Part shown: positions 12,531-44,313 of the stretch, one piece after another | Layout of the letters: each line of letters begins with the position of its first letter | Numbering within the stretch: position 1 is the first letter of the stretch | DNA from: Takakia lepidozioides | Taxonomy: Eukaryota; Plantae; Bryophyta | NCBI GenBank assembly: GCA_030704615.1 | Contig: CM060734.1 | Location: 62,620,001-62,684,000 of the forward strand | Length of the DNA: 64,000 bases | Direction of reading: 5' to 3' | Notes under the pieces: generated by a model | The model's database searches: none | What the model saw: the letters and a program-made list of their open reading frames with translations, nothing else | What the model was told of the DNA's origin: nothing | Program-made: the position numbers and the translations under genes

Positions 12531-13187
12531 GGCATCCTTGAGCGCGGAGGGGTTTCACGCAATGTGGTGATGGCACCCTCTTCTTCGACCTATTTCAGCC
12601 TGTTTTTTCCTCTCATCAGACTCGGCCCTGAGATGCCTGTTATCATAATCAGCCCTAAATTTTCATGTTGAATTCTGCAAGTTAGCTAGTTGACTAAACC
12701 TTTGATAGTTTGGAGTGACTGACATGATACTGCCAATGTGACAACAGGAAAGTATCCAGAAACAGGTAACAGAGACGAGAAGCTGTGGAATGAATACTTT
12801 TATGACCCCTATTAATGGTGGGACAATCGAGGTAAAAAGGTAAATGCCTGTTGGATTATAGAGAGTAGCAGATGCAATTGAGCATAGGAACTAGTGTGAT
12901 AAGTTGAGTTGGGTGTTTCCTAGAACAAATCTAGGCTGTCATTGTCAGCTGCTAGCAGCAAAGCAAGGATGTATGCATGATTTGTACATAGGCATGGATA
13001 GTTGAAGGAGCAGGGATAGAGTGTGGGTCCAAACTCATCCAACAGGGCCGGACTTCAAGCTCCAGATGACCTATGACTGTGGATCAATAGCTACATCAAC
13101 TAACTAGCGCAACATAGAGAGTGGAGTCTTAACATTCAGTGACAAGCTGCCATCACACCCCAACGATTCATCAGCTCCTGACAGCGG

Positions 13188-16100
13188 GTGTTGCACATAT
13201 ATTACATGAAAGGTCTGGAAGCTGGAAAGCAGGTGCACACTCACATTATCCAAAGTGGATTCACGCCAAGTGTTTTTCTCCTTAACACCCTTGTCAACAT
13301 GTATGTGTTAAGTGCGGGACCATCATGGATGCTCACCAAGTGTTCAACCGAATGCCTACACAATCGATTTTTGATCACGTGGCAGGATTACCAAGCATGG
13401 GTGTGGTATGAATGCTTTGGAGACCTATGAGCAAATGCTGCACGAAAGGATGAAGCCCAACCACATCACATTTGTTTGTGTTTGCAATGTGTGTGCAAGC
13501 CTGGGAGCTCTGGAAAAGGGGAAAGAGGTCCGTGGTGACATCGTCAAAGTTGGAATTGTACTAGATGTCATTCTGAACACTGCCCTGGTGGACATGTATG
13601 CCAAATGTGGGTGCATTGAGGATGCGAAGGGAGTTTTCAACGCTATGGCTGAACAAGATGTGGTGTCGTGGCACACGATGCTTGCAGGATATGCACAGCA
13701 GGGACGTCGGATTGTGGCTTTGGAGACCTATGATCAAATGATGTGGGCAGGGGTGAAGGCCAACCACATCACGTTTGTGTGCATTTGCAATGCGTGTGCA
13801 AGCCTTGCAGCCCTTGAAAAGGGCAAAGAGGTCCATGGTTGCATCGCGAAAGCTGCAATTGTACCAGATGCAAAGGGAGTTTTCAACAATATGGCTTAAC
13901 AAGATGTTGTATCGTGGCACGCGATGCTTGCAGGGTATGCACAACAGGGACATGGGATGGTGGCTTTGGAGACCTATGATCAAATGATGGGGGAAGGGGT
14001 GAAGCCCAAACACATCATGTTTGTGTGTGATTGCAATGCATGTGCAAGCCTGGCGGCCCTGGAAAAGGGCAAAGAGGTCCATGGTTGCATCGCGAAAGCT
14101 AGAATTGTACCAGATGTCATTCTGACCGATACCCTCGTGGACATGTCTGCCAAATGTGGGAGGCATTTCAGCAGATTCAGATACGTTTGTCTATCTCTTG
14201 CTTAAGTGCATCAAGATGAAAGGTCTGGAAGCTGGAAAGCAGGTGCACATTCCCATTATCCGAACAAGGATGCGAAGGGAGTTTTCAACACTATGGCTGA
14301 ACAAGATGTGGTGTCATGGCATGCAATGCTTGCAGGGTAAGCACAACAGGGACGTGGGTTGGTGGCTTTGGAGACCTAGCTATGATCAAATGATGGGGGA
14401 AGGGGTGAAGCCTAACCACATCACGTTTGTGTGTGATTGCAATGCTTGTGCAAGTCTGGCAGCCCTGGAAAAGGGCAAAGAGGTCCATGGTGACATCGTC
14501 AAATCTGGAATTGTACCAGATGTCATTCTGAACTCTTCCCTCGTGGACATGTATGCAAATGTGGGAGGCATTTCAGCAGATTCAGATACGTTTGTCTGTC
14601 TCTTGCTTAAGTGTATCAAGATGAAAGGTCTGGAAGCTGGAAAGCAGGTGCATGCGAAGGGAGTTTTTGACACTATGGCTGAACAAGATGTGGTGTCGTG
14701 GCACGCGATGCTTGCAGGGTATGCACAGCAGGGACGTGGGATGGTGGCTTTGGAGACCTATGATCAAATGATGGGGGAAGGGATGAAGCCCAACCACATC
14801 ACGTTTGTGTGCATTTGCAATGCATGTGCAAGCCTGGCAGCCCTGGAAAAGGGCAAAGAGGTGCATGGCTGCATCGTGAAAGCTGGAATTGTACCACATG
14901 TCATTCTGAACTCTACCCTCGTGGACATGTATACCAAATGTGGGAGGCATTTCAGCAGATTCAGACACGTTTGTTTGTCTCTTGCTTAAGTGCATCAAGA
15001 TGAAAGGTCTGGAAACTGGAAAGCAGGTGAACACACACATTATCCAAAGTGGATTCATGCCAAGGATGCGAAGGGACTTCTCAACACTATGGCTGAACAA
15101 GATGTGGTGTCATGGCACGCGATGCTTGCAGGGTATGCACAACAGGGACGTGGGTTGGTGGCTTTGGAGACCTATGATCAAATGATGGGGGAAGGGATGA
15201 AGCCTAACCACATCACGTTTGTGTGTGATTGCAATGTTTGTGCAAGTCTGGCAGCCCTGGAAAATGGCAAAGAGGTCCATGGTGACATTGTCAAATCTGG
15301 AATTGTACCAGATGTCATTCTGAACTCTTCCCTCGTGGACATGTATGCCAAATGTGGGAGGCATTTCAGCAAATTCAGATACGTTTGTCTGTCTCTTGCT
15401 TAAGTGTATCAAGATGAAAGGTCTGGAAGCTGGAAAGCAGGTGCACACTCACATTATCCAAAGTGGATTCACGTAGTTTGCACAATTAACACGGTTTGCA
15501 AACTTGAGTGGAAGGGGTGATGCCCGACCACATCACGTCTCTGTGCATTTGCAATGCGTCTACAAGCCTGGTAGCTATGGAAAAGGGCGAAGAGGTGCAT
15601 GGCGACATTGTCAGAGCTGCAATTGTACCAAATGTCATTATTGTGGACATGTATGAAGAGAGTGTTCGACAGTATGGCTGAACGAGATGTGGTGTCGTGG
15701 AGTGCGATGATTGCAGGATATGCACAGCAAGGGCGCGGCATAGAGGCTTTGGAGACCTATGAGCAAATGATGTGCGAAGGGGTGAAGCCCAACCACATAA
15801 CGTTTGTTTGCATTTGCAATGTGTGTGCAAGCCTGGCAGCTCTGGAAAAGTGCAAAGAGGTCCATGGTAGCATCATCAAATCTGGAATTGTACCCGATGT
15901 CATTCTGAACACTGCTCTGGTGAATGCATGCATCGTGGATCCAAAGGGACAGTATGGCTGAACGAGATGTTCGTGGAACGCGATGCTTGCAGGGTATGCA
16001 TAGCAGGGGCGCGGGATGGAGGCTTTGGAGACCTATGAGCAGATGATGGGGGAAGGGGTGAAGCCCGACCACATCACGTTTGTGTGCGTTTGCAGTGCAT

Positions 16101-16566
16101 GTGCAAGCCTAGTAGCCCTGGAAGGGCAAAGAGGTGCATGGTTGCATCGCCAAAGCTAGAATTGTACCAGATGTGGTTCTGAACAATACCCTTGTGGACA
16201 TATATGCCAAATGTGGGAGCATTGAGGATGCGGAGGGGGTGTTCCATAGTATGGCTGAACGAGATTTGGTGTCATGGAACGCCATGCTTGCAGGATATGC
16301 ACAGCAAGGGCGCGGGATGAGCATTGCAGACCTATGAGCAAATGATGGGGGAAGGGGTGAAGCCCGACCACATCACCTTTATATGTGTTCTCTCTACATG
16401 CAGCCACACTGGCCTACTGAATGAAGGAAGACGCTACTTCGATTCCTTGAGTCAAGATCATGGTGTCACTCCGACAGTAAAGCACTTTGGCTGCATGGTG
16501 GAACTTCTTGGACGTGTGGGACAACTGGATGAGGCAGTGGACTTGATTAATAAAATGCGACACAAG
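13188..16566 (+). pseudogene. PLS-class PPR (RNA-editing-factor type) pseudogene with internal tandem duplications
   Basis: Repeated P-L-S motifs (LVDMYAKCG.IEDA..VF..MAE.DVVSW), frameshifts and stops; ends with the L2-S2 region FICVLSTCSHTGLLNEGRRYFDSLSQDHGVTPTVKHFGCMVELLGRVGQLDEAVDLINKM. Confidence 0.9.
14161..15470 (+). repeat. About 400-bp tandem duplication (three full units plus a partial one) within the PPR pseudogene
   Basis: The junction tgggaggcatttcagcagattcagatacgtttgtc recurs at about 14157, 14562, 14941 and 15355. Confidence 0.85.
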
Positions 16567-19207: not shown

Positions 19208-19316
19208 CAGTGACGGGCTGTGGTACTTCTAACGATTTACTGTAAAGCACTCGTAAACCGATCACCAACTAAATAATCTCCAACTAACTAACCACCAACT
19301 AACTGATTGGAGCTGT

Positions 19317-19810
19317 CACAAGCAATGTCAAAAATCCTATTTACTGCTAGGTATTTGATGCTATTGTTGTTCCTGTAGGTGAATTGTATAGTAGTTATTT
19401 TGTTATTTCCATGGGAATAGTATCAGGTCCCCAGAGATTGTCATGTTCAGATTCTCGTATCAGCCACGGCCCACCATCATTGACCAATATAAAACCATCA
19501 GCTGCATGTCAGCTGAGAACTAGATCTTCGATTCATTGTATGCGACTCCAGAGAAACACCCTAGCCCACAAGTAGTTGGCCAGCAGCTTGAGATATTTCT
19601 CCGGGCTGTGATTGAATGAACTGGAGATTTCATTCTTAGCTGATGGTTTCATGTAGGTGATGCCTGATTCCGATTTCAGAATATGGCAGTCTCAGTGAAC
19701 CTGATGTTGTTGGAATGGGAATAGCAAAAAGACTCTTATAGAAATCAGCTACATGAACATACGCAGTATCAAGCACCTTGAAGTACATATGATTGTTGAG
19801 ATTGTTTGCA
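19317..19810. ncRNA. Long imperfect hairpin (about 145-nt arms) homologous to 26615-26992
   Basis: Arm 19317-19467 aligns collinearly with the reverse complement of about 19660-19810; an inner stem (tcagctgagaa / ttcttagctga) continues it. Confidence 0.6.
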
Positions 19811-21077
19811 CAGATTGTTAGCGACGGTGTTCCTCCTTTGGCGTCCAGTCCACATGAAAATGACGAGAATGTCGCTGGAGATTGACGTTCAATTGCTGAC
19901 ATTCTGCCTCCTCACTATGCCTGCAGAATCATCACATCTTCAAATGACAGCATTTTCGTTGCTGAATGCGTGAGCATAGAAAAAACATCACTCCGACCAA
20001 TCACATGTGGCACTGTTGAGGTAATATAACACTTTGGCAATCGGTTGGAGAACCAGGATGATGCTGAATTCCACTTTTCGAACCACGAGTGATCGCGCGA
20101 CAGATCTCTGCCTCTACCACCATTGAGAACCCCAAAGAGCCGAGTGCATCCAGATTTCAATCAACCACAATGGTGCCATCAGTTCGTCAGGGAAGGAATT
20201 TCGAAGCCGCCAAAATTACTTCAATCCATTTGAAGAGAGATTTTAACAGAGGTTCATAATCCGCTCAGGAACAAAGGAGACGACCATCGTGGGAGCTTGA
20301 ATTACGAGTTAGGAACCCGAATTGAGTCATAGACGATGATCGTGTCACTTGTTCCCCATCGTAATATGAAAACAACGGAAAAATTCTTCTCCTCCTACCT
20401 CCTCCAGCCTCCAGCCTGATCTGTTATTGCTTAAACTGACAATGAAGTCAACTTGTTTTGATAACATCTGATGGCACTGCTGATCCATGCTAGCTCCACA
20501 AGAGGATATATGAAGGAACCACGCGCGATCGCACGTGATTTCTCTCAAACTTCGATGACTAACATTATAGCCGAAAGGATCTGGCATAACATTGACAGAG
20601 TTAAATAACGTATGTGTGTAATGAACAGCCCGACAATAGTTTAATTCATCAATAACACAGAGTTGCTTCCCAAACAGCTCACACTCAACCCATATGTTCG
20701 AGATCGCCGTCGGTTACCACTGATGGCGGAATTTTGTGCACCCGAGGAGATGGATACAGTGGGAGATTGATGTAAGATATGACCAGACACCTCACTGGTA
20801 GCTGTACTTGATGACCTTAACAAACGTAAAGCCTCGCGGTCTCTCCGCTCAGCCTTACGCTGCCATTCCTCTTTCTTCTCCTGTCGAATTTGATTCTAAA
20901 CTTGACACTGGAATATAACTGTGTGGAGGCAGCACAGAAGGGAATTGTTAAAGAAATACAAAGATCATTGAAATATCATTGATCTCACAAAAGTCATGTG
21001 AAGTCAACATACGTATAAGTACAAATGGAGGTTGAAGTAAAGCTGATGGACTACACACAAAATAGGGCAATGTTAAA

Positions 21078-21870
21078 CTACGTACCCAGATAATCGGGAT
21101 TTTTTTTAGGGGGGTGCCAAACAGAAGCATCCATAAATCTTCCAAACCAGGACCAGTAGACGTGATTTCGATCTATCGGAGGGCCGGAAGATTTGCAGGA
21201 GTTCTTGCCGACGTAATCAACAACGGACTGGGCTCCAATCAAGCTAGAGAGAAAAGACCACAAAGCTTTGGTGAGGTCAACCAAATCCTCCAAATTGCTT
21301 GATTCCTTGAATGTGATGGGGAAGACTCCAGTATTCACTAGGTTTTCGGTTGCCTTGGATGGGTCATCGTCGACCAATAGAATTTGCCCCTGCCTAGCAA
21401 ATTCTTTCCTACTAAATTTTACGAGAATACTCTTAATATCTTTAATAAGATATTTCATTCCAGGCTTAATACGTCCAGCTGTATCTGTGCAATGCTCGGC
21501 AGACCATATGAAACGAAATTGTTTCATAATTTTCGGAGGAACGAAACACCCCATCATCTTGAATACAGTATCCCTCTCAGAGCAAGACCAAATCGCTACA
21601 TAAAAATGAGTCAATGCAAGTCGAAAAAACTCCAGCGCTCCAGGTCTTGGAACCACAAATGGTCTTGCGGGCACCCGAAATTGTTACTTTCCTCAAGTGG
21701 AACCTCTGTTTAAATAACTCACCTCCGGTAGGAGGTGGACTGTAGCAAAGAAGTCCATTGACACTCAGTACCAACAACATGCGTTTGTGTTTCCGGACAC
21801 CACACAGTTCTTGAGTAACAACGTTCTGAACCATCCAAAAGAGCCCATTAGTTTCTGTTATCTGACCCAA
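21078..21870 (-). pseudogene. FCP1-homology / NIF-family HAD (CTD-phosphatase-like) domain; probably part of a spliced gene with upstream exons at about 22.2-23.1 kb
   Basis: LLVLSVNGLL...(frameshift)...VVPRPGALEFFRLALTHFYVAIWSCS...FIWSAEHC...YLIKDI...ILLVDDDPSKATEN..NTGVFP. Confidence 0.8.
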
Positions 21871-23554
21871 AAATTAGATATTTCCCATACATTTTGCAAC
21901 TCAAAAAATGCCACGACATACTTGCGTTTTGTGATTTACCTAGTTTCTATACACTGATTTTCAAATGGAATATTTTGCGAAGGTAATATTTTCAGCATTA
22001 CGACACCCAATTGAGACTTGAGACAAAAAATCACAATCGGGAGTCTATGAGTTTCCTGCAACCATGCGCGATCGCGCGAGGTTACTCTGTGTAAAGTTGT
22101 GTCGACAATGTAAATGATATATGTAATGATTACTAGGAAGCCAGAACCAATAAGACAGAGGACCAAGTGAAGGAGATACTTATTACCTTTGCTAGATTTA
22201 CCCTTCGATTCTGAGGCGGGTTACCACTGGAGGCAGGTGAATGTTAAAGGGATAAGAGAACGCCAGATGCTGTTTTTTCATCGTCGGACACGACCGCTGC
22301 TGATTGCTGTGATCTGTGACGTTTCCTTGACACAGGACCATTCGGAATTATGGGGGGTTTGGATATATGTCGGTCTTGTCGGTGTGCTGACCTCAGTCGA
22401 CGAATGAGTGAGTTCAATAACCTTCTCGCTGACGGTTGGCAGTGGAATTCGGTTTCTTTCTTTCTGCACATCCTAAACCGAATTCAAACGGAAAAAAAGG
22501 GATTACCTTGGAATACAACCCCACAGAAGTTGCCGCTTCACAAGAAGGTCATACGTTGCAGCTTTTCTGGCCTAGAGTAAAGAGAGAAAATTAGAGGATG
22601 AACAGAAACACGGTAACAATAAAACGCATGGATGAAATAGAATTAAATCACCTGACTTCTCAGCAGCTGAGGTGTCCAGCCTCGTGATCCGGGCAGTTCA
22701 GCGATAGTTGCAATCAATTGTTCGGTAGGCTCATGTAGATGCCCCGTGACGGCGTCTGGTGGAAAGTGTTGGGATAAGGACGGAGTTCCAAAGAGGATTC
22801 CCCAAGATAGTGAGAGTCATTTTTCACTATGCATCCAACCTCAGTTAAATCATCGACCCTGCTAACGGTGGATTCACCTTTTGACATTTTGAGCCTCGAA
22901 ACAACATCCGAAACACTGATGGGATCACTCTCCATAACAACAATGGATACTTGAGTAGACAACAAGTTGTCAGGTCCTTGGAAAGCTTCTGGCCTGATCA
23001 TTTCTACATCGTCAACAATATCAGACGATATTGTTTCGCCAATTGGAGATGCATTTGTGGCATGGAGAACATATTGATATGGGCATACCTGCAAATGACA
23101 TATATGTCAACAAAGTTAAGTTGGAAGAACGCGTGACCACGCGAGGTTCCGAAAAGAAATCGATGGACATAAAGGAACAACGAATCCATTGACCGTTACA
23201 TATGGTTTGGCAATATAACAATTTCCATGCAAAGCAAAAGAATATCAGAAGAAAACTGAAACTCCATGGTCTTCACAATCAATTATAAATAGTAAACTGT
23301 GTCCACAGTAGGACGCGAATATTTACTTATCATTTACTCGGAAACCTAGTTATCATTCCTGACGTGATGTGGCGCTGACACGTCGGCCGTCACGTCCGAC
23401 GTGCGTCATGTCACGTCGAATCCGGACGTTTATCCACGTAATTTTTTTTATATTTAACTTTTACGATTTACTTCTACCCTTTGTAATGACATGGCAGCCA
23501 CGGTGTAAAACAGACGTGGCCAATTATTAATATTTATTAATTCTTTTTAAAAAA

Positions 23555-23832
23555 ATGAGTCCGCCTTTATTGGCAGTCGCTTGTACTTTAATATTTTATT
23601 AAATTAAGCGACTGCCAGTATTGGCGGTCGCCCGTAATTTTATTTTTTTAAATGAAGCGACCGCCGAAATTGACGGTCGCCCGTAATTTATTTATTTTTA
23701 AATGAAGCGACCGCCCATATTGGCGGTCGCCCGTAATTTATTTATTTTTAAATGAAGCGACCGCCCAAATTGGCGGTCGTCCGTAATTTATTTATTTATA
23801 AATGAAACGACCGCCCATATTGGCGGTCGCTT
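23555..23832. repeat. Left array of GCGACCGCC-N5/6-GGCGGTCGC palindromes
   Basis: About six units of roughly 50 bp separated by AT-only linkers. Confidence 0.9.
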
Positions 23833-24454
23833 GTATTTTATTACATTTTAAAATAAGTAGTCGCGTGTTTTTTTGTTCTTAGAAATCCAGAGACCCGCCG
23901 TGTGGCATTTTTTATTTATTTTTAATCATGAAGCGGCGCCTCGGCCAGCCACGTGGCGAGGTGCCACAGGTCAGGAAAAACGAAACAAATGGGATAGGGG
24001 GAGGTGGTTTTGAACCCTTGACCTCTCCCATGTGGATGCGCGTGGCGAGGCGCCACTGGCCTGTCGCGCCTTTTCAAGCATAATGCCATTTTATTTTATT
24101 TTTGGGAGGGGGGGTTGGGCGCCTGTATAAACCATTCCCCCCTCCTTTTCTAATCACTTTTGCCCCTCTTGTGGTATGGTTCTTTGGCATCCTGTAGTCC
24201 TTTCGGACTTCGTTGCTTGGCACTGCCAACGGGAGGTGCAAAGGTGATTATTTGGGGGGGGGGAAGGTTTTGTCGGTCTTCTATTGGTCAGTCCCACACA
24301 CTTGTTCACGGTACAATCATCGTATCACCATTTTGCCGTTTCCGGATCTCCGGCGGCCTGTTTTTTTTGCAGAAAACTACGAAGACACCATCCACACGCG
24401 TTCATTGTCATTTTTCTGAGGTTTTGGACCCTGTAGTGGGCAAAGGTTTATACA

Positions 24455-25931
24455 ATGTCGGGGGTTGTGAATTCAAGTTCTGGGGCGGGATCGTCTGGGG
24501 GGCGGAAGAAGAGAAAACGTGCCCACGAGCGGGATAGCCAGGTCAACAAGCCAGACTACCCGGGACTGGATGCCTTGGATAGGGTGAAAGAAGTGGTAGC
24601 GGATTATTTCAAGGGTAGGGACATGATGAGGCTGGAGAGTGCTTATGTTAGGCATGGATGGGAGGGGTTTCAGATTTTCCAGCAAAATATGAAGAGAACA
24701 ATGACAAACGCTTTGGCGGGGGCTAAGTGGACGGCGGACAGGGACAAGCCGAAGTTCAATCGGTGGATCCAAAGTAGGGCGAAAGACGCCACGTGGAATT
24801 TGAGGCAGCTAATGAAGACATGGAAGGGTAGAACATCAACCAAGGATCGAGTGCCTTCTGCCGAAGCCGAGTTAATGCGGCGTGTTGAGTATTGGGTTTG
24901 CTCGGCAAGTCAGAATTCACATCGCCGGACTAGGGTTGTCCCTTGGAAGGCGGGGTCATCGGGCGGGGGAGGCACAACTGGTCTTTATTACCTGAACTCT
25001 AGTGCGAAGGTGGTAGAGATTGGCCCTTACAAAGAATGAGGGTATGCTAAGGTCCGTCACTGTAGGATTATTGGCGATTCTAGAATACCGGAGCGTTAGG
25101 AGCTAACAGGAAAAAAACCCCAAGTCCAAAAATCCAGAAAAAACGTTGAGACAACATAACGACGAGTGTTTGATAGTGAAGTTCCAGCATCCGGGTGTTA
25201 TATCGTATTTTGCTGTGAATGCACGTGAGGTAGAGGGTTACACTCGCAGGTGGAATGGGGGGACAATACGCGACATAATGAAGCTTGATAGAAAATGGGG
25301 CAACGATTCGGACAACAGGGTGATTTTGGAACAAAGGGGAACGAAAGCAGAGTTCCAGGAATGCGATCGCTTGCTTCGTTTCCGAAAAGTGCGCAGTAAA
25401 CTTCCATAGGCACTGGTGTGCATCATGGATGTTGTCCACAAGAACGGTGTCCTGCACAACGACTTGTCCCCCGACAACATCTTGTTGCATTTTCCAGATG
25501 GCACCGAGGAGATCAAGATTGGGGTGTGTGATTGGGGCTTAGCCACCCCATTGGGCATACGCAAAGTCTCGCCGTACCAGTTTGAAAACCAAGACAAGCT
25601 GGACCGGGAACTCGCGAAAAGATGGTGGGAGGAAAAAGATATTGCATCGGTTTTCAATGCGAATGCCACCCCCCCCCCCCCCCCCCTCCCCCAGAACATG
25701 ACGTCGGAGGCCTTTGCCGTTGGGAAGATAGCGGTACGAATAAATGGCGGCGTTCATTATGATCAAAATATGTCCCAGGACCAATTTACGAGATGTTGTT
25801 GGCATTCAATGCTACAAAGGTTGTACGACAACAACAAGAATGAGAGAGTGACATTAGCCCATGTAGTACTTCGGTTCATGGGCAAGCCATTCAATTGGCC
25901 TGAGCCGAAAGACGTATATAGGACGGAGTAG
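24455..25931 (+). pseudogene. Protein kinase (hAT cargo), disrupted
   Basis: G-loop region IGPYKE*GYAKVRHC, QHPGVI, catalytic loop LHNDLSPDNILL, DWG in place of DFG; stops at 25037-39 and 25407-09 plus a frameshift near 25.1 kb; basic N-terminus (GRKKRKR). Confidence 0.85.
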
Positions 25932-26014
25932 ACCATAGTCTCGTAGATATGACATTTTTTGCGGTACAATGGTTCTTTTATGAAGACATAACTCAATTTT
26001 GATCGTGCATGTAA

Positions 26015-26546
26015 TAAATAAAGTCTCATTGTAAATACTACATTGCATAAGCTCGACCCTGGCACCTGTTATCGCAACATAAATGGTTTGTGTACTAGCT
26101 CACTGTTTATATTTGTAATGTTCCAAGGTTTCGGATAGGGTTATGAGAAAACAATGTATTAGTTCCGTAGGAGTTAGACAACAAACGTCTCCTCTCATTC
26201 AACTGTGCGACACTACCATGAGAGGCATGGATCGGAAAGTTATAGGTGCATATGCGACCTTCGAACGTTTGATACTAGGTCTCTACTTAAATGTGCGGAG
26301 GTCGCATGTACACCTATTACTTTTTTATCCATGCCACTCATGCTAGTATCGCACAGTTGAATGAGATATGGAACGTTTGTTGTCCAACTCCTATGGATCC
26401 AATATATCATTTTCTCATTACCCTGTCAGAAACATTGAAACATTCGCAGTTACAAACAGTGCCACAATACACTGCCAGTTTTGTTGAAATAACATTTGTG
26501 AGGTTCGAGCGTATGCAATTTATTATTTACAATGGAATTTTATTTA
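26015..26546. ncRNA. About 530-nt imperfect hairpin
   Basis: For example ctcattcaactgtgcgacactaccatgagaggcatggat pairs with atccatgccactcatgctagtatcgcacagttgaatgag; pairing extends over arms of about 260 nt. Confidence 0.75.
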
Positions 26547-26614
26547 CTCGGGGGACCGGTACTGCTGTTGAAGCGCAACTGATGGTGCGAGTTCTCTATT
26601 GATTAGAACTGTCA

Positions 26615-26992
26615 CAACCAATGTCAACAATCATATTTACGGTAAGGTGTTTCATGCTATTGTTGTTCCTCTAGCTGAATTCTGTAGTACTCTTTTTGCT
26701 ATTCCCATGCCAACGTCCTCTGAGACTGTTATGTTCAAACGGACGTATCAGCCACCCCGGCCAACTTGCAGGTTGCAGCCATGGCCCACCATAAATTGAA
26801 TGAATTGGAGATTTTGTGCGAAGTTCCTGGTTTCATTTCCGTGGTGGCTCATACGGAATTCGGAATATGGCAGTCGTAGTGGACCTGATGTTGTTGGTAT
26901 GGGAGTATCAAAACGATTCCTAAATAATTCTGCTACATGAACATCGGCAATATGAAACACCTTGCAGTACATATGATTCTTGATATTGTTTG
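26615..26992. ncRNA. Imperfect hairpin with a 100-nt ungapped stem, homologue of 19317-19810
   Basis: 26615-26714 versus reverse complement of 26893-26992: no gaps, about 23 differences, about 7 of them G-U compatible on the + strand. Confidence 0.7.
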
Positions 26993-27287
26993 CACGGATT
27001 ATTTGTGTTTGTGCTTTCAAGTGGCGAACATTTCCGCCATGGTGCGGAAGACGTGCATTGGTCACATTAAACGGTTAATGTGATACCATTTCATAAATGT
27101 ATCACATCGCATTTGTGAAAATGGATCACATGAACCGTTCTATGTGGCCTACGGGAGTCTTCGATGGGTACGAGATCAATGTGGCCTACGAGATCTGCTT
27201 CCACCAACAAACATGTGATCATTTCAGAAGCGCTAGAACTTTGAAGCGACGATGGGCAAGGTTCTTCATCCATATGTTCAACATGCT

Positions 27288-27585
27288 GAGTCTTCTGTAA
27301 TGTCTCTTACTTCGTAATGAGGTACTTCTCCAACTCTTATTTTTCCAATGTTAATATCTTCCATCTGGAACATATCCACACATGCGTATATAACTTAAAA
27401 AACCATATGACCATCAAAACTGGAAGCTGGGGATGAGGCTTATAAAAGTTGAGATGGTCATTTGTTTTTTAAGGATTTCTGCACACATATGTGGATCTGT
27501 TCCAGGTGGAAAATATTAACATATTGGATAAAGTGGACATGGAGAAGCACCGCATTACGAGGCAGAAGACACTACAAAAAGAGCT
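27288..27585. ncRNA. About 300-nt imperfect hairpin
   Basis: atgttaatatcttccatctggaacatatccacacatg pairs with catatgtggatctgttccaggtggaaaatattaacat; outer and inner stems extend it. Confidence 0.72.
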
Positions 27586-27603
27586 TCAAATGACATACCA
27601 TAA

Positions 27604-29975
27604 CAGGTCCCAGTATAATCGAAGACGAAACCCCATTCATTCAATGGGCGATTGAATGGTTGCCCATCCAAATGATTTTCGTTTGCTTTCAATCTTTGCC
27701 ACTATGTTCAACATACCATGTATCAGGTCCCGGACTAATATCAGATCAATCGAAATTCATTCGATGGCTCAACGGATGGTTGGCCATCAAAATGATTTTG
27801 GTTCGCTTTGAGACTTGGCCACTATGTTCAATGTGCCATGTAAGAGGCCCCAGAGTAATATGAGATCAATCGAAATTCGTTCAATGGGCCAACGAATGGT
27901 TGCCCATCCAAATGATTTTCGTTCGCTTTGAAACTTGGCCAGTGTGTTCAATGTATCCTCTGATACGTCCCAGTGTAATACGAGATCAATCGAAAATCGT
28001 TCGATTGTCCAATGAGGCGTTCACTTGTCATCTGGTTTTTGTTCAATGCGAAAAAAAAATCCTGCAATGCGTGCACGGTTATTGCACCCATTGAACGGAT
28101 GTGGTTGAAGCCCCTCTTTTGCCCACATGTGCTTGAACATGTGTGCAACACATGTGCGGAGACACAACAGACGAATAAATCATTTGCCTCCCCATCGACG
28201 CGCTCCCCCCTCAAGCCATTCCACAATTTAATTGAATTTAAATTTATTTTAAGCCAATAAATAGGTTTGCACTGCCTTTCAGTGGGGATTTCTGGCACGT
28301 ATCGATTTTTTTTATTGGCTCAATTTTGTTGTGCGGCTTCCAGCATCCCACAGTTACTCCCCCGCCAAAATTTGGACCAATAAAAAATGCCCCAAAAAAA
28401 AAGTGTTCTCTTCGCTCACTATTGCAGAACTCTCTATGAAGAGTGCATGAAATTGAACACAAATCAAGTTTGGAGTGCAAAACAGCGAAGAAACTGTGGT
28501 TTTGGATCCAAATGAATTTCAATCGCTCCCAAATTTGGCAAAAAATCGTGAGCACGTGAAACACAGTCCTACAGGTCCCAAAGCAATAGCAGCTCCAACA
28601 GAATACATTCAACGGGTGAACGGATGGTTGCCCATCCAAATCATTTTTGTTAGCTTCCAAATTTTGCCAGCACGTTCCAGACACCCTCTCACAGGTCCCG
28701 GACTAATATCAGATCAATCGAAATTCATTCAATGGCTCAACGGATGGTTGGCCATCGAAATGATTTTGGTTCGCTTTGAGACTTGGCCACTATGTTCAAT
28801 GTGCCATGTAAGAGACCCCAGAGTAATATGAGATCAATCGAAATTCGTTCAATGGGCCAACGGATGGTTGCCCATCCAAATGATTTTCGTTCGCTTTGAA
28901 ACTTGGCCAGTGTGTTCAATGTACCCTCTGATACGTCCCAGTGTAATACGAGATCAATCGAAAATCGTTCGATTGTCCAATGAGGCGTTCACTTGTCATC
29001 TGGTTTTTGTTCAATGCGAAAAAAAATTCCTGCAATGCGTGCACGGCTATTGCACCCATTGAACGGATGTGGTTGAAGCCCCTCTTTTGCCCGCATGTGC
29101 TTGAACATTGAAACATGTGCGGAGACACAACAGACGAATAAATCATTTGCCTCCCCATCGACGCGCTCCCCCCTCAAGCCATTCCACAATTTAATTGAAT
29201 TTAAATTTATTTTAAGCCAATAAATAGGTTTGCACTACCTGTCAGTGGGGATTTCTGGCACGTATCGATTTTGTTTTTGGCTCAATTTTGTTGTGCGGCT
29301 TCCAACATCCCGTGGCTACTTCCCCGCCAAAATTTGGACCAATATAAAATGCCCCAAAATTTTTATTTATTTTTGCTCACTATTGCAGAACTCTCTATGA
29401 AGAGTGCATGAAGTAGAACACAAATCAAATTTGGAGTGCAAAACAGCAAAAAGAAACTGTGGTTTTGGGTCCAAATGAATTTTGATCGCTCCCAAATTTG
29501 GCACGCACGTTGCATATGGCTACATTACACGCCCCATTCAAAAATGGAATGAAAAAAAAATCGCGAGCACGCGAAACACAGTCCTACAGGTCCCAAAGCA
29601 ATAGCAGCTCCAACAGAATACATTCAACGGGTGAACGGATGGTTGCCCAACCAAATCATTTTTGTTAGCTTCCAAACTTTGCCAGCACGTTCCAGACACC
29701 CTCTCACAGGTCCCGAACTAATATCAGATCAATCGAAATTCATTCGATGGCTCAACGGATGGTTGGCCATCGAAATGATTTTGGTTCGCTTTGAGACTTG
29801 GCCACTATGTTCAATGTGCCATGTAAGAGGCCCTAGAGTAATATGAGATCAATCAAAATTCGTTCAATGGGCCAACGGATGGTTGCCCATCCAAATGATT
29901 TTCGTTCGCTTTGAAATTTGGCCAGTGTGTTCAATGTACTCTGTGATACGTCCCAGTGTAATATGAGATCAATTG
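27604..29975. repeat. Higher-order tandem repeat: 120-bp monomers within about 970-1015-bp units (about 2.4 copies)
   Basis: Monomer starts at about 27604, 27724, 27844 and 27964; the block recurs at about 28572 and 29587. Confidence 0.9.
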
Positions 29976-30413
29976 AAATTATTTTGTGCTTTGTGTTCGT
30001 AGAAAGATCATAGATTTTGCGAAATGATTATGAAATACGCAGGGACCAGGCGAAATTTGTTTGGAAGAGGACCGTTCGTAACTCGTTATAATTTATTTGT
30101 TAACATCAATTTTCCTTGTTCTACAGCTTTCGGAGTTCATTGCAAATACCCATATACACGTCATGACCAAATATGACACCATTGTAAATTTGTTTACAGG
30201 GTGAACTACTTCTTCCCCATCACACGAGTGTAAATGTGAAGAAAACGCTGCTCATGCAATTGAAATTGGCAGGTGCCGCACATGTGCATTGTGTATTAAC
30301 AAAATTGGTGATATACAAACTTGGCGGAATGCCATCACTGTGTTTTCCAACAATATTCAAGGTACAACAAAAATGCATATTGTATATGTACTATGTTGCT
30401 AGTCATTCAAAGC

Positions 30414-32645
30414 CTAGTCGTCACTGTCCGAGGATGTGGAATTGGATGTTGTGGCCTGATTTGCACTGCCAATTGCCAGAGCTTGCGTCCGTGATCTCGT
30501 GGTCAATGAGGGGCTCAATGGCATGTGATCAATTATGGCCTGCATCCGCCTACTTCGCGACGAAAGTTGATTTTCTTCTTCACTCTCACGACGTGACGGA
30601 GGTGGATCGAGAACAAGTGCTCGGGCTGCTTGCAAATCGGCAACGAGGCCGTCCACATCCGCCAATACAGCCCCCGAAACACGATGATAACGGTCTGTCC
30701 ATAATCGTCTCCATTTCTCTACAACTGCCTTGATGGTACTTTTGAAACTTTCCAACTGCCTCTTGCGCGGCCCTGTCCCTAATCATTGTGTCGTTTCGAT
30801 GATAAGCCGCTCCGTACACATCATTCATTCGGCGTTGACATATTATAGCATCTTCCAGTTCGGACAGCAACAAATGTCTCCCAATCGGTTGTCGGTTATA
30901 CAATTCGTTCTCCTCCGGCACCCATGGAACCTGTGGGAGCCGGATAAACCTGGACCTTCTTTGACTCCAATGCCCTCCCAGATTGCGGCAAAACTGCTCT
31001 CTCTCCCACCAATCTCGAATACCTCCCGCACGTATGGTTATCTCCCAATCAGATGTGACCCAGAAATACTGGGGATCTTTGATGTATGCCGGGTTTCCGG
31101 CATGTATGCCATGCATCTCTCTGTCTGCATCCCATACCAAGTTCTTGCCCCAATGCACACAATTCAAAAATGTGTATGGTAGCCAGGTTGTGTCGATTGT
31201 GTTCAAAACCTATGGGCATCCGATCCTCCAAGCCCATCAGCTCATAGAAACGGCGATGGATTAGTGTACGGCATTCTGGGCAAGCGCTCGTCCGCAAGGC
31301 TTGCGGGATAAGACATGTGAGATGGAACATATGTCCATATGATCCAAGCACATGACATCCCTCTGGGCCGTATGGATTCCTACACATCGAACAAACTGTG
31401 CCATCTGATATCCATGATGGCAAAACGCCTTGTGGTATCTCCTCCCTCTGGGCCGGTTTGATGTGGCTGGTCATCTTGGTGTCCCACTCTTCCTCTATCT
31501 CTAATTCCCAGTTTATGCTTCTGTTGGACCCCAAAATTCTGTGTTCACATCGATCGAACATAGAATCCACATCTGCCCCAATTGGTATACCCGACGAACA
31601 CGCTTGATGCGATGCGGAGATCGTTATACCTTTGCATGTTGGTATAAATGCTATACACGCTACGGTTCGACAAGCGTGCGACACGTTGCAAGCCTGACAG
31701 TGTCCGCTCTACCGGTGCTTCTCTGGAGGCCAAATGGGTCGCCCATTATACCCAATTCTCCCAATCATCATTCAATGGGACCCATGCCTGAATCTCCAGC
31801 GTTTTGGACAAGCGCCATGCAGTTGCCATGGCAATGTCTCGCTCCTTTGTAACGCGGTCGATATCTAATATCGGGTTCATCTCCGATTGAATGGCGATCC
31901 TCGAGCATTCCCCAGTTTCCAGTACTGGTTCTTTTCTTTTCCTCCTTCTCTCATCCGCAATTCGTTGTTCCTCAACCACGGTTTCATTGGCCACAAGGTC
32001 AAGAACGTCCGTAACTTCCTGAATGATAAGGTCAATACTGCGATCGGGCATCGCAAACTCCGCGTCCATATCCACGACATTTGTTCGATCCTCATTGTGG
32101 ACAACAGTGCCTTCATTGTTTGGAGACATGTCTTGCAATGTAGCTTCCAACTCGGCTATGCGCAGTGGTTGCCAGTCTAGTCGGTCCTGCAGGGTCCTGA
32201 TTCGTTGGTCTCTTTCCGCCAGTTGTTCCTCTAACGTTGCAGCCGGTTGTATTCCGAACGTGTCCGGGATGTACTCCAAATCGTATAGCAACCTTGCGTT
32301 CCTCCTACTAGCAGTTTGTCAATTCACTGGACGCAAGAGTATGACATCCACGTACAACATGGCTGCCAAGGTATACGAGATTTGACCCTTTAAGAGAGGT
32401 TGACCCCACAATGTGCAATGCACCTCATTCGCCCTATGCTGGAAATGATCGTTCGTGCAAGACCTGGACTCTGCGTAATTGTTTCGGGTTTGCACGTCAT
32501 GCATATCCAAAGGCCACAATCGATTGATGTGGTACCATTTCACGAATTTTTTGTATCTCGCCATCGGCCACCATAACTTTTCCGGAACATTCTGCCAGCC
32601 CTCTTCTGTTAGTATGCTAGGGTCACCAAATACTTCCCAATTCAA
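30414..32645 (-). pseudogene. RING-H2 finger protein (candidate E3 ligase; hAT cargo), frameshifted
   Basis: CSMCRNPYGPEGCHVLGSYGHMFHLTCLIPQALRTSACPEC (third ligand C>Y); overlapping collinear ORF pieces include a coiled-coil and an ERRRKRK basic patch. Confidence 0.7.
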
Positions 32646-33092
32646 AGTCTTGCCTTGACCCTTTGATTTTCTTAGGTGGGGTCATCTCTTCCATGATGGT
32701 CATTGTACTGGCCCTCTGCCATTCTACAACAATCGGAGCAACACTAAACGAGGTTTTCTAAAAAGACGTAACTCTAAACCCTTCCCCTGTTAAATAGGTT
32801 TGAGTAGGTGTCAAAATACTTCTTAAAAGCTAATTTTGTAGAATAAAATGATCCTGGAAGCCAGAGGAGGGCCTATGGGAGCATTCTGCAACGAACTCAC
32901 AGAAATCGCGGCAAAAAATACCCCCCACCCAACCAATGGCCTCCTTCTCCACGTGACTACGTGTCGTGGAATAATAAAATGCCACGCACACAGAAGTTGT
33001 GTGGAGAGGAAGTGAGGGGAGAATAAGCCTCCCTTGGCTTATATCCCCCTCCTCCCCTCATTTCTCAGGCCACGTGCATGGCGAATCTTCTA

Positions 33093-34692
33093 GAAGCGAC
33101 TTCCAATTTGGCGGTCGCTCCATTTTCTGGGAAAAAAAGAAAAACGACCGTAACAACAAGCGGTCGCTCCATTTTCCGGAAATAAAAAAAATAAGCGACC
33201 GCCAACATAGGCGGTCGCTTCATTTTTTTTAAAATAAAAAAAATAAGCGACCGCCAACATTGGCGGTCGCTTCATTTTCAAAACAATTAAAAAAAATAAG
33301 CGACCGCCAGCATTGGCGGTCGCTTCATTTTCAAAAACATTTAGAATAAATAAGCGACTGCCAACATAGGCGGTCGCTTCATTTAAATTTTAAAAAAAAA
33401 AAACAAAAACGACCACTGGCATAGGCGGTCGCTTCATTTAAAAAAAATTAAAAAAAATTAGCAACCGCCAGCTTTGGCGGTCGCTTCATTTTCAAAATAT
33501 TTAGAATAAATAAGCGACCGCCAACATAGGCCGTCGCTTCATTTTCAAAAACTTTAAAAAAAATAAACGACCGCCAACATAGGCGGTCGCTTCATTTAAT
33601 TTTTTTTAAAAAAAAAGCGACCACCAACATAGGCGGTCGCTTCATTTTTAAAAAATTTAAAAATAATAATCGACCGCCAACATAGGCGGTCGCTTCATTT
33701 TCAAAACATTTAAAATATATAAGCGACCGCCAACATAGGCGGTCGCTTCATTTTCAAAAACTTTAAAAGAAATAAGCGACCGCCAACATAGGCAGTCGCT
33801 TCATTTTAAAAAATTTAAAAATTTTTAAAAAAAATAAGCGACCGCCAACATTGGCGGTCGCTTCATTTTTAAAAAATTAAAAAATTAGCGACCGCCAGCA
33901 TTGGCGGTCGCTTCATTTTCAAAACATTTAGAATAAATAAGCGACCGCCAACATAGGCGGTCGCTTCATTTTCAAAACTTTAAAAAAAAATAAACGACCG
34001 CCAACATAGGCGATCGCTTCATTTAAATTTAAAAAAAAAAAATAAGCAACCACCAACATAGGCGGTCGCTTCATTTAATTAAAAAATTAAAAAAAATAAA
34101 ACGACCGCCAACATAGGCGGGCGCTTCATCTTAAAAAAATTAAAAAAACTAAGCGACCACCAGCATAGGTGGTGGCTTCATTTTCAAAACATTTAAAATA
34201 AATAAGCGAGCGCGAGCATAGGCGGTCGCCTCATTAATTTTTTTTAAAAATAAATAAACGACTGCCAGCAGAGGCGGTCGCTTTATTTTCAAAACGTTTT
34301 AAAAAAATAAGCGACAGCCAACATAGGCAGTCGCTTCATTTTCAAAAACTTAAAAAAAAATAAGCGACCGCCAACATAGACGAGCGTTTCATTAAAAAAA
34401 AATAAAAAAAAATAAGCGACCGCCAGCATAGGCGGTCGCTTCATTTTCAAAACTTTTAAAATAAATTAGCGACCGCCAACATAGGCGGTCGCTTCATTTC
34501 CAAAATAATTAAAATAAAAGCGACCACCAGTAATGGCGGTCGTTGCATCTTAAAAAATAACCATCACAGCGACCGCTATAAATGGCGGTCGCTGCATTTT
34601 GTAAAAACAAAAACCGCCAGTAATGGAAGTTCACTCCTTGCTCCATGCGCAGGTCACACTTAGTAGAAGCGACCGCCACTTTGGCGGTCGCT
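33093..34692. repeat. Internal array of about 30 AAGCGACCGCCAACATAGGCGGTCGCTTCATTT palindromes with poly-A/T linkers
   Basis: Directly visible, period about 49 bp. Confidence 0.95.
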
Positions 34693-35476
34693 CCATTTAA
34701 ATAAAAATGAATGCACAGTTGGAAGCATGACACAATTGTTCTCCATTCCACAAGCAAATTACCGAACACAAACATGAGCAAGTGACGGTGCCTTTGGCCG
34801 ACATTTTGGCTGGTATATACATGGGCAACATCTTTTATTTTCCAACACATACACAACAACAATACAAATACTCATAGTGACAATGATCACATTGGTATTA
34901 TTTCAGTACAGAAATATAAACATGTGTACTAAAAAGTGCGGATGCATGCCTACAACTGTTTTGCTTCAATTTATTCTTCTGCTTCGACGGCGGGACGAAG
35001 AAGATCCTAATCATAATGCTCCGATGGGTTGAAAATCCGGGACACCCTCGACTTCACCACCGTTGTCATGATGAGTGCTGGAATCGTCCTCCCTATCCGA
35101 CCTCATATGTCTAGGCCTTTGAATCTGCAAGCGACCTCGAACCACATTTAGTTCTCTCTGAGGTCGACTCCCGCTCCAGTCTTGAATACCATCCACGGTA
35201 TCTGGCCTGTTTGTGGGCCGATCGCCTACAAAAGGTTGGACTGTTCTCTGTCGTTTATGGACTTGGGACGCAATCGAAGGTGGTCTCGAGGGAGGTATCG
35301 GAGGGGGGACTGCCCGAGATGGATCGGCATTAGATGGTCCGGCATGTGAGGAACTACGGGTCTGCTGCGCAACACGTCGGTTAAGGTGGAATTGTAGTGG
35401 CAGGTTGTCATCATCCGAGGCTTCAACTTCCGCCCGGTCCAATGCAGCATAATGATGCATGCGTATGGAAAATAGA

Positions 35477-37969
35477 TCAACCCTGTTGCTTCTTAATGCC
35501 CGCTGTGTTGATGGGGAGCTGGATCGGTTTTGGCATTGTGGTGGTGCTGGTCGTATTGGTGAGGTTTGATCCCGTCCCCGTCGACTGTACAATGGGTTCG
35601 ACACCATCGTTGATATGAACAGAGTTGCGTACGTCGATCGGTCCTGGCAGTACATCACCCCTAAGCTCCATTGGGGCACTACCGGTGGCTTCAGCGTATA
35701 GTGGGGGGCAAAGGTCGACCCCAACTTCATTTTGAGGACCATGTTCTGGGGATGACACAATTGCAGCTTCACCTTCATCTGCGATACGCACTTCTTCAAG
35801 AAGGTCATCAAAGGTCGGCTGGATATAAGCATCATCCTCTGTGAATGTAAACGGGTCATACGCATTTTCGGGAGCATCATCGGATCCATCTACACTATCG
35901 GAGGCAGATGATTCCCTCTGAGATGATTCTCTCTGAGGCTCAATATCGTTACTCATCGAATCAGCCTCAGAAGCAAAGTCTTCGGAATGCAAATTCCTCT
36001 CATACCATGCTGCAGCATCATCCGCTGCCCTCTCACGTAGCAGTCGGCAATTGGTATACACATACGCCAATTTATCAGCCCTCGCGAGATTCAACCTGTT
36101 GCGAATCTTGTTGTGAACAAGTGAGTAACTGCTCCAATTGCGTTCGTAAGATGAGGCAGAGCACACTTGAGCAAGAATACGCTTCGCAATGGGAGCCAAT
36201 GTTCTTGCTCCAGCTCCAATCAAATCCCACCATTCATGTGGCAACATATTGAGCTCTTTGGGATCCGACATGTCCTCAAAAGGGTCGCGGCGATCTGAGA
36301 AGCATTGGTACTCGGATATAGCTCTCTCTGCATGGGTCGGCGGAGCCAGTCGCATGAGCACTCGCACGAGGCCGGCCTTGGCATCAGCGTTGTCTCGGAG
36401 CATGGTATTGTCGAGCAAAAATGGATTGAGCAAAGCCCCCGCATAATGCAAGTCCGTTCGAACCATCGAACGACGGTCGTAAAATGCATCCTCAACACTG
36501 TCCGCAAGTTCAAGTTGCAAGGAGAAGGGAGGATGCCTCAAGGATTGGACGTGCTTCTCAAGATTTTGCATTAATAACCATGTCTTGCCCATTACTGGTT
36601 GCTTTCCATCAAACTCCCGCAAGACGATTAATACCGGCTCAACCATATAAACAAAGTTTTCACATTTCTTCCAGAAATCATCGCTGCGAATGCTATTTCA
36701 AACTTTTCGATTTTTGCCCAATGACTTGGCTTTTCTGGAGTCCCGCAATGTCCGTGTGTACGCATCCCATTGAGGATCGATGATGGTGTGCTCCAGACTG
36801 CTCTTCACCGTCACCAACCGATCTACCATCAAGAAGTTAGTGGCAAAACGAGTTTCACCTGGATTGCAGAGGTTGTATTTGGGTTCGTGCCTCCTATATA
36901 TTGAAAAAGGGATGTGGTGTGTGCGGATGAACGACACAATAGTCTTCGCTCGCTTGACAAGTTGTTTCACCCATTGTTCTTTTCCCCAATCTTTCAAAAG
37001 GAGGTCAACGATATGAGCAGCACAACCGTGATAGTACATATGAGGATAACGTGCCAACAACATGTCTGCAGTGTTTCTCATGTTAGCGGCATTGTCTGTG
37101 CATATTTGCACGATTCTATCACTTCCGACCTGTTCGATGAAGTCCGTAAATAGTTGACATTGATAATGTCCATCTTTCTTCTCGCCGCTAGTGTCCACCG
37201 ATCCCAAGAATTGTTCCCTAGCTGGACATACAAGCATGACATTGAACAACGGTCTGTTTGTGACAGAACTCCAACCATCGGCACATATAGTGCTTCCATA
37301 TTTTCTGATACACTCGTCCGTCCTATCGTTGACATTTTAGGTAAGCTCGGTCATGACGTCTTCTAGCAATCATGTACGGAGATTGTGATAAGTCGGAGAC
37401 ACGTACGTGGATCTGGACTCCGAGGTTGCTCTAACAACATAAACAAATGCCGGAAGCCTTGCCACATTAAATGATATATTGGCCTCGAAGAAAAACTGCG
37501 TCCATTTTTTATTCAACTGTCTTTTCGCAGACAAGTTAAGACCTTCTTGCATGGATTGCTGCCGTAATCCTCTACTCTGTTGAAATGTAGGGGTACAAAG
37601 AGGTGTTGAAGCAGGTGTTGCTCCGGCACAACCCACTTGTCCAAGGACATCCGAAGCTCCACAAGAGTCGCCCTGGGTACTAATCGGGGCATCCTGATGG
37701 GAAGATGGAGTGTTCTGCTCAGAGGTCATGTCCAGATCCAAAGACATTGGAATATTGCCTCCACAATAGGCAAAGTGGCTTTTTACCCGTATGAATGCTT
37801 TGGGGCATAAACCTACCCCAGCGCTCTTCACACCTTTATAGCCGAGGTTAGCGAACAATCGATCTTTACGATAAAAAAGCTTTAATCCACATAGGTTGCA
37901 CTCAACACTACCAGTGACACTGACAGTGTTCATGATTGTTGTATACCAAGGGCTTCATTCCTCCCTCAT
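35477..37969 (-). pseudogene. hAT transposase (BED-like finger, DUF659 region, C-terminal dimerisation domain), disrupted
   Basis: CNLCGLKLFYRKDRLFANL; IVQICTDNAANM; HGCAAHIVDLLLKDWGK; PGETRFATNF; EWWDLIG...LAPIAKRILAQVCSASSYERNWS; several stops and frameshifts. Confidence 0.93.
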
Positions 37970-38414
37970 CTTCACCCAACATCCACTCCCCTGGGACCTA
38001 GCGATGCAAGCAACAAAAAACAGTCACCTATAAATGAACGTGTTGTGAATGTAGAGTGCAATGCGATAGCCCAACACTTCTACACCTGTTAGCAACCCAA
38101 GTGGTTCGATGTGGGTTTGTAGTGTTGAGCTTATACACAATTTGCTGAAGTGGCTTTAGTGGAAGCCACAACGGTAAAAGGTGCGCACCCTCCTCTTGGG
38201 CTACACTCTCGTTCAATGGAAGAGAACATCTAAAGAAACCTCAAGTGTTTGGGCCAAAAGAACTGATGAGCTTGGTGACCCTCCTCCCTTATATATGATC
38301 CAAGAAGGATGAAAGTGAAATGAAAGTGAAATGAAAGTGAAATGAATAAATGACGAACCAATAGCGCCCACCCAAAAAAGGTTGTACAACCATATTTGTT
38401 TGTAATTTTGAAAT

Positions 38415-40062: not shown

Positions 40063-40305
40063 TGTTCATTTTGTTAATTTTGAAAATGTATTTGCCACCG
40101 CCACCGTGTCGGCGACGTGGCTGCTTAAGTGGCAGTATTTTACCTAGTATTATTTTTACCATAATATTCCCCGAACCTGACGTGACTTGACACTGACTGA
40201 CGGACGTGACGCTGATAACCGGGCTCGGAAATCACGATATTGTGAATTGTCAATATAGTCAAGAAGAGGCTTGAACTGTGGATCGTTAACTTTGAAAGGT
40301 GGAAA

Positions 40306-40800: not shown

Positions 40801-41065
40801 GTAATCTTGATTTACTTAAGTGTCTTTATCACTCCTTCACAGATCTGACAGCCGGGATCTCCTCCTGTGAGGGGACCCCGCTTGATAATTTTGACGTTAA
40901 TGGAGTGCTATGCAAAATAACGAAGCACCAGAGCCCACATTTTTCGGACAATAACTAATCACTTTAATATCCCATGTTCCACTTCCAGGGCCTCTAGGTA
41001 CTTTAGATGTGCATCTCATTCCTCCTTGTTCCTAGGCCATGGAAAGTCCCAGCGATTAATGAATT

Positions 41066-41575: not shown

Positions 41576-41579
41576 TGCT

Positions 41580-44268: not shown

Positions 44269-44313
44269 TTCTGATGTTATATCAAGTTTGTTATAAATTG
44301 GGTTTTACAAGTG

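Follow-up and report, generated by a model that had tools for sequence, protein, structure and literature searches.

The window analysed here, a 64,000-nucleotide stretch of the Takakia lepidozioides genome, contains a hAT transposon at positions 23345 to 40223. It is bounded by an 8-bp target duplication (CTCGGAAA), its termini are CCTAGTTATCA and TGATAACCGGG, and its terminal repeats follow the pattern CCYRGTTATCA. Open reading frames (ORFs) on the minus strand at about 35.0 to 37.9 kb encode a transposase with a DUF659 domain (E = 2e-27) and the hAT dimerisation domain PF05699 (Dimer_Tnp_hAT; E = 2.6e-5, above the cut-off). The 8-bp duplication, the short inverted repeats at the termini, and the dimerisation domain of the transposase are together the features by which the hAT superfamily is recognised, and the host element is an autonomous-type hAT.

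Two further genes of the element face each other. A kinase-like gene on the plus strand (24455 to 25931) consists of an N-terminal ORF (24455 to 25039) and a second ORF for the catalytic loop and C-lobe (25416 to 25931); it has a partial Pkinase match below the cut-off (E = 1e-6) and a catalytic-loop motif, and its relatives carry PF00069. Convergent to it lies a RING-like ORF on the minus strand (31049 to 31684). The block of hairpins that is the subject of this analysis sits in the noncoding spacer between the two, directly 3' of the kinase-like gene as a preliminary description had it: the stop codon is at 25931, 84 nt before the first hairpin. Within the kinase ORF, a run of about 26 C residues interrupted by one T (25667 to 25693) encodes a proline tract, and the contig depth in an independent plant-metagenome run (X5) has a tenfold spike in the bin that holds this run, which is probably due to low-complexity cross-matching.

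Arrays of the palindrome GCGACCGCC-N5-6-GGCGGTCGC, with periods of 50 to 53 and 102 nt, are found at 23561 to 23854, 33160 to 34558, and 38546 to 40051. They occupy both subterminal regions of the element and one internal region, each upstream of one of the three genes, and may represent transposase-binding or promoter-proximal repeats. Elsewhere in the window there are tandemly duplicated PPR-repeat gene fragments (12000 to 16400, 48800 to 49300, and 63600 to 64000), which are strongly depleted of CpG (observed/expected ratio of 0.44 versus 0.72 for the window).

The block itself (26015 to 27585) is composed of four clustered imperfect fold-backs of 90 to 530 nt each within about 1.6 kb. The first, H1 (26015 to 26546), is a single continuous hairpin of 532 nt with a loop of 18 nt and a folding energy of -281 kcal/mol, compared with -119 ± 6 for dinucleotide shuffles (z = -26.6). 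H2 is a unit of 409 nt (about 26597 to 27005) with a centre of about 180 nt; its inverted repeat extends by eye to about 26609 to 26997, and folding of 26615 to 26992 gives z = -10.2. H3 (27288 to 27585; 298 nt) has z = -13.6. These three long fold-backs, with 113 to 220 predicted pairs and z scores of -10 to -27, bear out by comparison with shuffled sequences what had been described at these places. A fourth, weaker hairpin had been placed at 27108 to 27233, where 34 of 200 shuffles fold equally well (z = -0.9); the actual hairpin, Hw, is a small one of 90 nt at 27060 to 27149 (z = -10.1).

A repeat finder reports arms of 72 to 100 nt with a complementarity of 77 to 88%, and global alignments give arm identities of 80, 73, and 80% for H1, H2, and H3, respectively, with few gaps, so that the description of the stems as mismatched with few gaps stands. 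So does the statement that the hairpins are mutually unrelated: in a self-BLAST of 25500 to 28100 against the window, each hairpin matches its own other arm, and no similarity between hairpins was found. The spacers that separate the units are 50 to 140 nt long and fold no better than chance (z = -0.9 and +1.1). A scan of the whole window found no further long hairpins except those in the arrays of palindromic units at 33.1 to 34.6 and 38.5 to 40 kb; since the other long inverted repeats in the 64 kb are confined to these tandem arrays, the clustering is real and nonrandom. CpG depletion does not set the block apart (observed/expected ratio of 0.80 versus 0.85 to 0.88 in the genes of the element). 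AATAAA motifs resembling poly(A) signals are present at both ends of H1.

Directly after the hairpins come three blocks of a 120-nt tandem repeat (27593 to 30005), which occupy what remains of the spacer as far as the RING-like gene. The blocks are about 1 kb apart, and each has approximately three copies of the repeat followed by about 600 nt of common sequence. In contigs assembled from DNA of the species, the repeat reaches a summed depth of 1 to 2.8 million, versus about 40,000 for the hairpins, and in contigs of two putative RNA runs, its depth is 30 to 230. It resembles a separate, very abundant family of the satellite or MITE-like type.

The hairpins are shared by the family. From one DNA run of the species (X1), 16,426 contig pieces align to positions 24400 to 28000 at a likeness of at least 80%, mostly 90 to 99%. 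The summed depth of these contigs is 22,000 to 56,000 over the kinase, 17,000 to 40,000 over H1, and 41,000 to 46,000 over H3; over H2 and Hw it is higher, at 54,000 to 87,000, or about 1.5 to 2 times the kinase level, although summed depth in such a layout, made of assembled contigs only with a cut at 80% likeness, is not equal to copy number. The depth over the 120-nt repeat is 20 to 60 times higher than that over the kinase and hairpins. Thus, the whole kinase-hairpin stretch is highly repeated, and no hairpin rises far above its neighbours in depth. Among the 15 of 48 joints listed, none removes a whole hairpin and hence none represents an empty site. Because the contigs cover the kinase and the hairpins alike, the hairpins were inherited with the element, as had been proposed when they were described as part of a transposon; the same family-wide cover rules out that the hairpins are nested insertions acquired independently by this copy alone.

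Comparison of the two levels of divergence dates the mismatches. The arms of the hairpins have diverged by 20 to 27%, versus 1 to 10% between most family contigs and this copy, which indicates that most arm mismatches predate the amplification of the family. Run X1 has 165 variable places, and at 79 of them this copy has A where the family majority has G or T where it has C. Among the 40 of 227 variants listed, there are six stem differences at which the letter of the family would give a new or stronger pair and two at which it would disrupt one. This excess of A for G and T for C, together with the stem differences, is the private, deamination-type decay of a silenced copy. A similar share of such changes is seen in run X5. 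Searches of metagenome contigs for exact matches to the H2 core and to a 22-mer from an H3 arm found none.

A protein search with the kinase ORF found distant relatives only (31 to 44% identity). One of the relatives lies on a 68.7-kb contig in ENA (L001), where the N-terminal ORF has 29% identity (E = 1e-15) and the gene is split into the same two ORFs, and no inverted repeat was found within 4 kb downstream of it. Since this relative lacks hairpins, a conserved association between them and the kinase gene is rejected. The region in question (6472 to 8075) is on a plant-like metagenome contig with a legume-lectin gene nearby, and the ORF is broken just before the catalytic loop, which suggests a conserved intron or a common gene structure outside this genome.

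H2 occurs a second time in the window. The second copy, H2B (19303 to 19823), is more decayed, has 112 extra nt in its centre, and lies in a different repeat. Homology between the two copies stops on both sides within about 10 nt of the inverted-repeat ends, and the flanks are unrelated. H2 is thus a self-contained unit found again in an unrelated context, and the statement in the preliminary description that the hairpins are not MITE debris fails for it. The repeat that carries H2B also contains a minus-strand ORF (21078 to 21674) with a domain like that of NLI-interacting factor (CTD phosphatase family; E = 2e-8).

The two copies also permit a test of selection on pairing, the scope of which is H2 versus H2B only. 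H2B still folds (z = -8.6). Left arms are 78% identical between the copies and right arms 81%, and left-right complementarity is 71 and 64% within the copies and 68 and 66% across them. The aligned arm columns comprise 85 conserved pairs, 15 mismatches common to both copies, and 36 one-sided changes that break a pair. Strict covariation is limited to one column, in which G:C is exchanged for C:G, and RNAalifold finds the same exchange. Since complementarity is no better within copies than across them, and since there are 36 breaking changes to 1 compensatory change, pairing was not maintained. The arms of H2 and H2B have undergone neutral decay since the copies parted, with no detectable selection on pairing.

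Other traits of MITEs are found unevenly among the units. All are short (90 to 532 nt) and noncoding, and their inverted repeats reach the unit ends. Dispersal in unrelated contexts applies to H2 by way of H2B; H1, H3, and Hw have been seen in this element only. The hairpins had also been said to lack target-site duplications. This holds for H1 and Hw, for which a scan of 12 nt to either side of the ends found none, although a TA duplication might be concealed in the outermost T-A pair of H1; it does not hold for H2 and H3, which have weak 5-nt candidates. H2 is edged by GATTA on both sides and H2B by GATTG on both sides, so that the edges are alike within each copy and differ between the copies, as expected of a duplication; with four of the five letters in common, however, this repeat may be part of the H2 unit itself rather than a duplication. 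H3 has TTCAA on both sides, but on the left about 7 nt separate it from where the inverted repeat ends.

Evidence for a function as RNA was sought in pairing, family membership, targets, and transcription. With respect to pairing, RNA-level selection on one plus-strand precursor would be expected to leave more G:U than A:C oppositions on that strand in every hairpin. The counts are 14 and 12 in H1, 14 and 4 in H2, and 5 and 9 in H3, with 34 and 26 for the whole cluster, so that H1 shows no bias and H3 a bias in the opposite direction. The bias in H2 has an estimated nominal P of about 0.03, and it recurs in the same direction in H2B (18 and 6), with which it is common and is hence counted once; it is the one hint of an RNA role. 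Transversions, which are beyond rescue by wobble pairing, account for 68 of the 128 arm mismatches. The folding energies of the plus and minus strands are -281 and -277 kcal/mol for H1, -156 and -126 for H2, and -129 and -141 for H3, in line with the wobble counts: the two strands of H1 are equivalent, whereas the plus strand is favoured in H2 and the minus strand in H3.

With respect to architecture, H1, H2, and H3 are inverted repeats with stems of more than 100 bp, as in hairpin RNA (hpRNA) loci, and the earlier likening of the long imperfect stems to such loci was correct. MicroRNA genes are another matter. The plant criteria of 2018 reportedly call for a fold-back of up to about 300 nt with one well-paired duplex of 21 to 22 nt; H1 (532 nt) and H2 (409 nt) are too long, H3 (298 nt) is borderline, and only Hw (90 nt) is of a suitable size. 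At Rfam gathering thresholds, no match was found in the hairpins. At permissive thresholds, long MIRNA models match at 18 to 68 bits versus gathering scores of 50 to 230, equally on both strands; the best of these is MIR7533 (68 bits versus a gathering score of 230, again equal on both strands), and the others reach 20 to 41 bits versus gathering scores of 65 to 150. These matches are a generic likeness to hairpins and not family membership. The only Rfam match at gathering thresholds in the window is a full-length gene for the U5 spliceosomal RNA on the minus strand (4605 to 4721; RF00020, 73.8 bits versus a gathering score of 40).

The search for targets within the window was negative: no 21-mer of the block matches at 19 or more of 21 positions outside the block itself and H2B. 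It follows that small RNAs from the block would have no target in the genes of the element or in the neighbouring PPR genes. Self-targeting of the kind known from Mu killer was rejected on the same ground, there being no such match to any of the kinase, RING, transposase, and PPR genes. The proto-microRNA model, in which the arms derive from coding sequence by inverted gene duplication, found no support either: Pfam matches are absent from the ORFs within the hairpins, and a search of 1.84 billion representative proteins gave no relative of a 105-amino-acid ORF in an arm of H2.

The stretch is contained in no run recorded as RNA. In the two putative RNA assemblies, only short pieces of the block appear, at 26164 to 26269 (about 84% likeness) and 26774 to 26887 (95 to 100%), and all of them run into unlike sequence. 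No contig in these assemblies spans any hairpin and the kinase is almost absent, although assemblies do not prove absence and precursors that are diced would not assemble. The scarcity of kinase and hairpins is compatible with a silenced family. The piece at 26774 to 26887 comes from the mostly unpaired centre of H2, and matching contigs break off at 26789, 26818, and 26887 in both runs; apparently, a sequence related to this centre is expressed in another context. Overall, the polycistron of microRNA precursors that had been proposed for the block is not supported: the stems, at 130 to 265 bp, are too long, the Rfam matches are generic and 60 to 160 bits short of the gathering scores, H2 lacks compensatory evolution, the wobble bias is inconsistent between hairpins, and no spanning transcript is seen in the two putative RNA assemblies.

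The reading that we place first, with about as much doubt as confidence, is that the block consists of old, decaying, MITE-like fold-back modules in the spacer of a high-copy-number hAT family and that it is a possible source of hairpin small interfering RNAs (siRNAs). The four unrelated, old palindromic units are a fixed internal part of a transposase-encoding hAT family that also carries the kinase and RING genes. Under this reading, H2 at least is a self-contained, MITE-like module that inserted into a second repeat as well, and H1, Hw, and H3 probably had the same origin or arose by fold-back copying during repair. The units were already imperfect when the family amplified and would have decayed since then as DNA passengers, with no repair of pairing. 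Transcription reading through from the kinase would give long, mismatched double-stranded RNA, which Dicer-like enzymes could cut into a mixture of 21- to 24-nt siRNAs. Such siRNAs would match only the spacer in the family's own copies and would thereby assist the host in silencing it; the products would not include discrete microRNAs directed at host genes.

Several observations sit less easily with MITE-like modules. No unit is surrounded by a convincing target-site duplication. H1 and H3 are unseen outside the element, and the contig cover over them is not above that of the kinase, although this is a poor measure, in that the 80% cut would exclude solo copies of the age of the arms. The packing of four hairpins into 1.6 kb immediately 3' of a stop codon could be due to selection on an active master element, and a comparison of dead copies cannot reveal selection at that level. 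H2 and H2B, in addition, both have more G:U than A:C oppositions on the plus strand (14:4 and 18:6).

An unlikely alternative is that the units are local inverted duplications, formed in the ancestral element when the gap left by hAT excision was repaired by fold-back or template-switch synthesis that made an adjacent reverse copy of part of the spacer, with H2 reaching the other repeat by recombination or capture. The lack of clear target-site duplications speaks for such an origin, as do the very short loop of H1 (18 nt), the tight packing of the units with spacers of 50 to 140 nt, and the fact that H1 and H3 are known from this context only. A preprint on the hAT element Ac/Ds describes inverted duplications produced by alternative transposition (bioRxiv 10.1101/2020.01.07.897926), which also counts for this origin. 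However, the arms match no other part of the element, and the homology of H2 to H2B does not reach more than about 10 nt from the inverted-repeat ends on either side, as it would in a mobile unit, so that random capture is unlikely.

We think it improbable that the block is under selection as a hairpin-RNA locus encoded by the transposon, that is, a polycistron or a double-stranded RNA decoy for Dicer and Argonaute that serves the element. Its transcript would be the 3' portion of the kinase mRNA or would start at a separate promoter, and the locus could act to limit the element's own copy number or as a decoy. The start of the block 84 nt after the stop codon, the AATAAA motif at the base of H1, the wobble bias of H2 on the plus strand (14:4), and stems that were already mismatched in the amplifying element are in keeping with it. 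Inverted repeats with mismatches reportedly avoid the self-methylation by which perfect hairpin transgenes become silenced (PMC9263138), and this escape would provide a rationale for a selected design with mismatched stems. Against selection stand the single compensatory change versus 36 pair-breaking ones in H2, the wobble bias, which H1 lacks and H3 shows in reverse, the half of arm mismatches that are transversions, and the lack of a target in the window. The two putative RNA assemblies contain no spanning contig, although the kinase is hardly present there either, and retention of the block in the copies is explained by common descent alone. The fullest version of such selection, in which the block is hAT cargo cotranscribed with the kinase, the mismatched stems evade methylation, and the resulting small RNAs or double-stranded RNA sink tune the silencing of the element, is in our view quite improbable. 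That the palindromes and the satellite form a terminator or barrier, at the level of DNA or of transcription, against collision of kinase and RING transcription is scarcely credible, since AATAAA motifs such as those at both ends of H1 are common in AT-rich sequence and the decay of H2 argues against constraint on pairing, even though the position exactly between the convergent plus-strand kinase and minus-strand RING genes would suit such a function.

Among known systems, MITE-like modules have their closest counterparts in MITEs and fold-back elements, including nested MITEs and the hairpin or MIRNA loci derived from them (PMC9641971; PMC10004981). These share with the units described here a noncoding nature and near-full-length palindromes, and like them H2 is discrete in two unrelated contexts; MITE-derived units can also be transcribed into hairpins that feed small-RNA pathways (PMC9641971; PMC10004981). 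Unlike typical MITEs, the units have no clear target-site duplications, H1, H3, and Hw are known from one context, and all four are coinherited with an autonomous hAT. Palindromes in the long terminal repeats (LTRs) of maize Sireviruses (Bousios et al. 2016, PMC4728375) and microRNA-like structures in maize transposons (PMC10760457) have been proposed to be templates for small RNAs that aid host silencing. The palindrome region of Sireviruses is, like the block, a family-wide cluster of hairpin-forming sequence inside a transposon. However, its palindromes are short, form part of the cis-regulatory region of an LTR retrotransposon, and are demonstrated siRNA hotspots, whereas the block has stems of 40 to 265 bp and lies in a 3' intergenic spacer of a DNA transposon.

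As with Mu killer and other long inverted-repeat hpRNA loci (PMC3440606; LIRBase, PMC8728187), read-through of the block could give a hairpin RNA that is processed to siRNAs. Mu killer, however, is an inverted duplication of a transposase gene and a terminal repeat and so targets essential parts of its family, whereas the arms here match nothing else in the element and would target only the spacer. Plant polycistronic MIRNA clusters likewise have several hairpins in a row, here within an orientation-neutral block, but the stems here are far too long for such a cluster, with no family match and no conservation of pairing.

If the ordinary reading as MITE-like modules is true, the block is another case of palindromic modules of this kind inside a larger transposon. 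For annotation, it recurs wherever this hAT family lies and should not be called a set of MIRNA genes, and it offers a handy marker of the age structure of the family. If the block were the main siRNA hotspot of the family, it would provide a DNA-transposon model for the idea raised by Sireviruses, in which built-in hairpins set the speed of silencing. If it were selected cargo, it would be, in a plant unlike an angiosperm in appearance, a DNA-transposon-encoded counterpart of the Sirevirus palindrome region.
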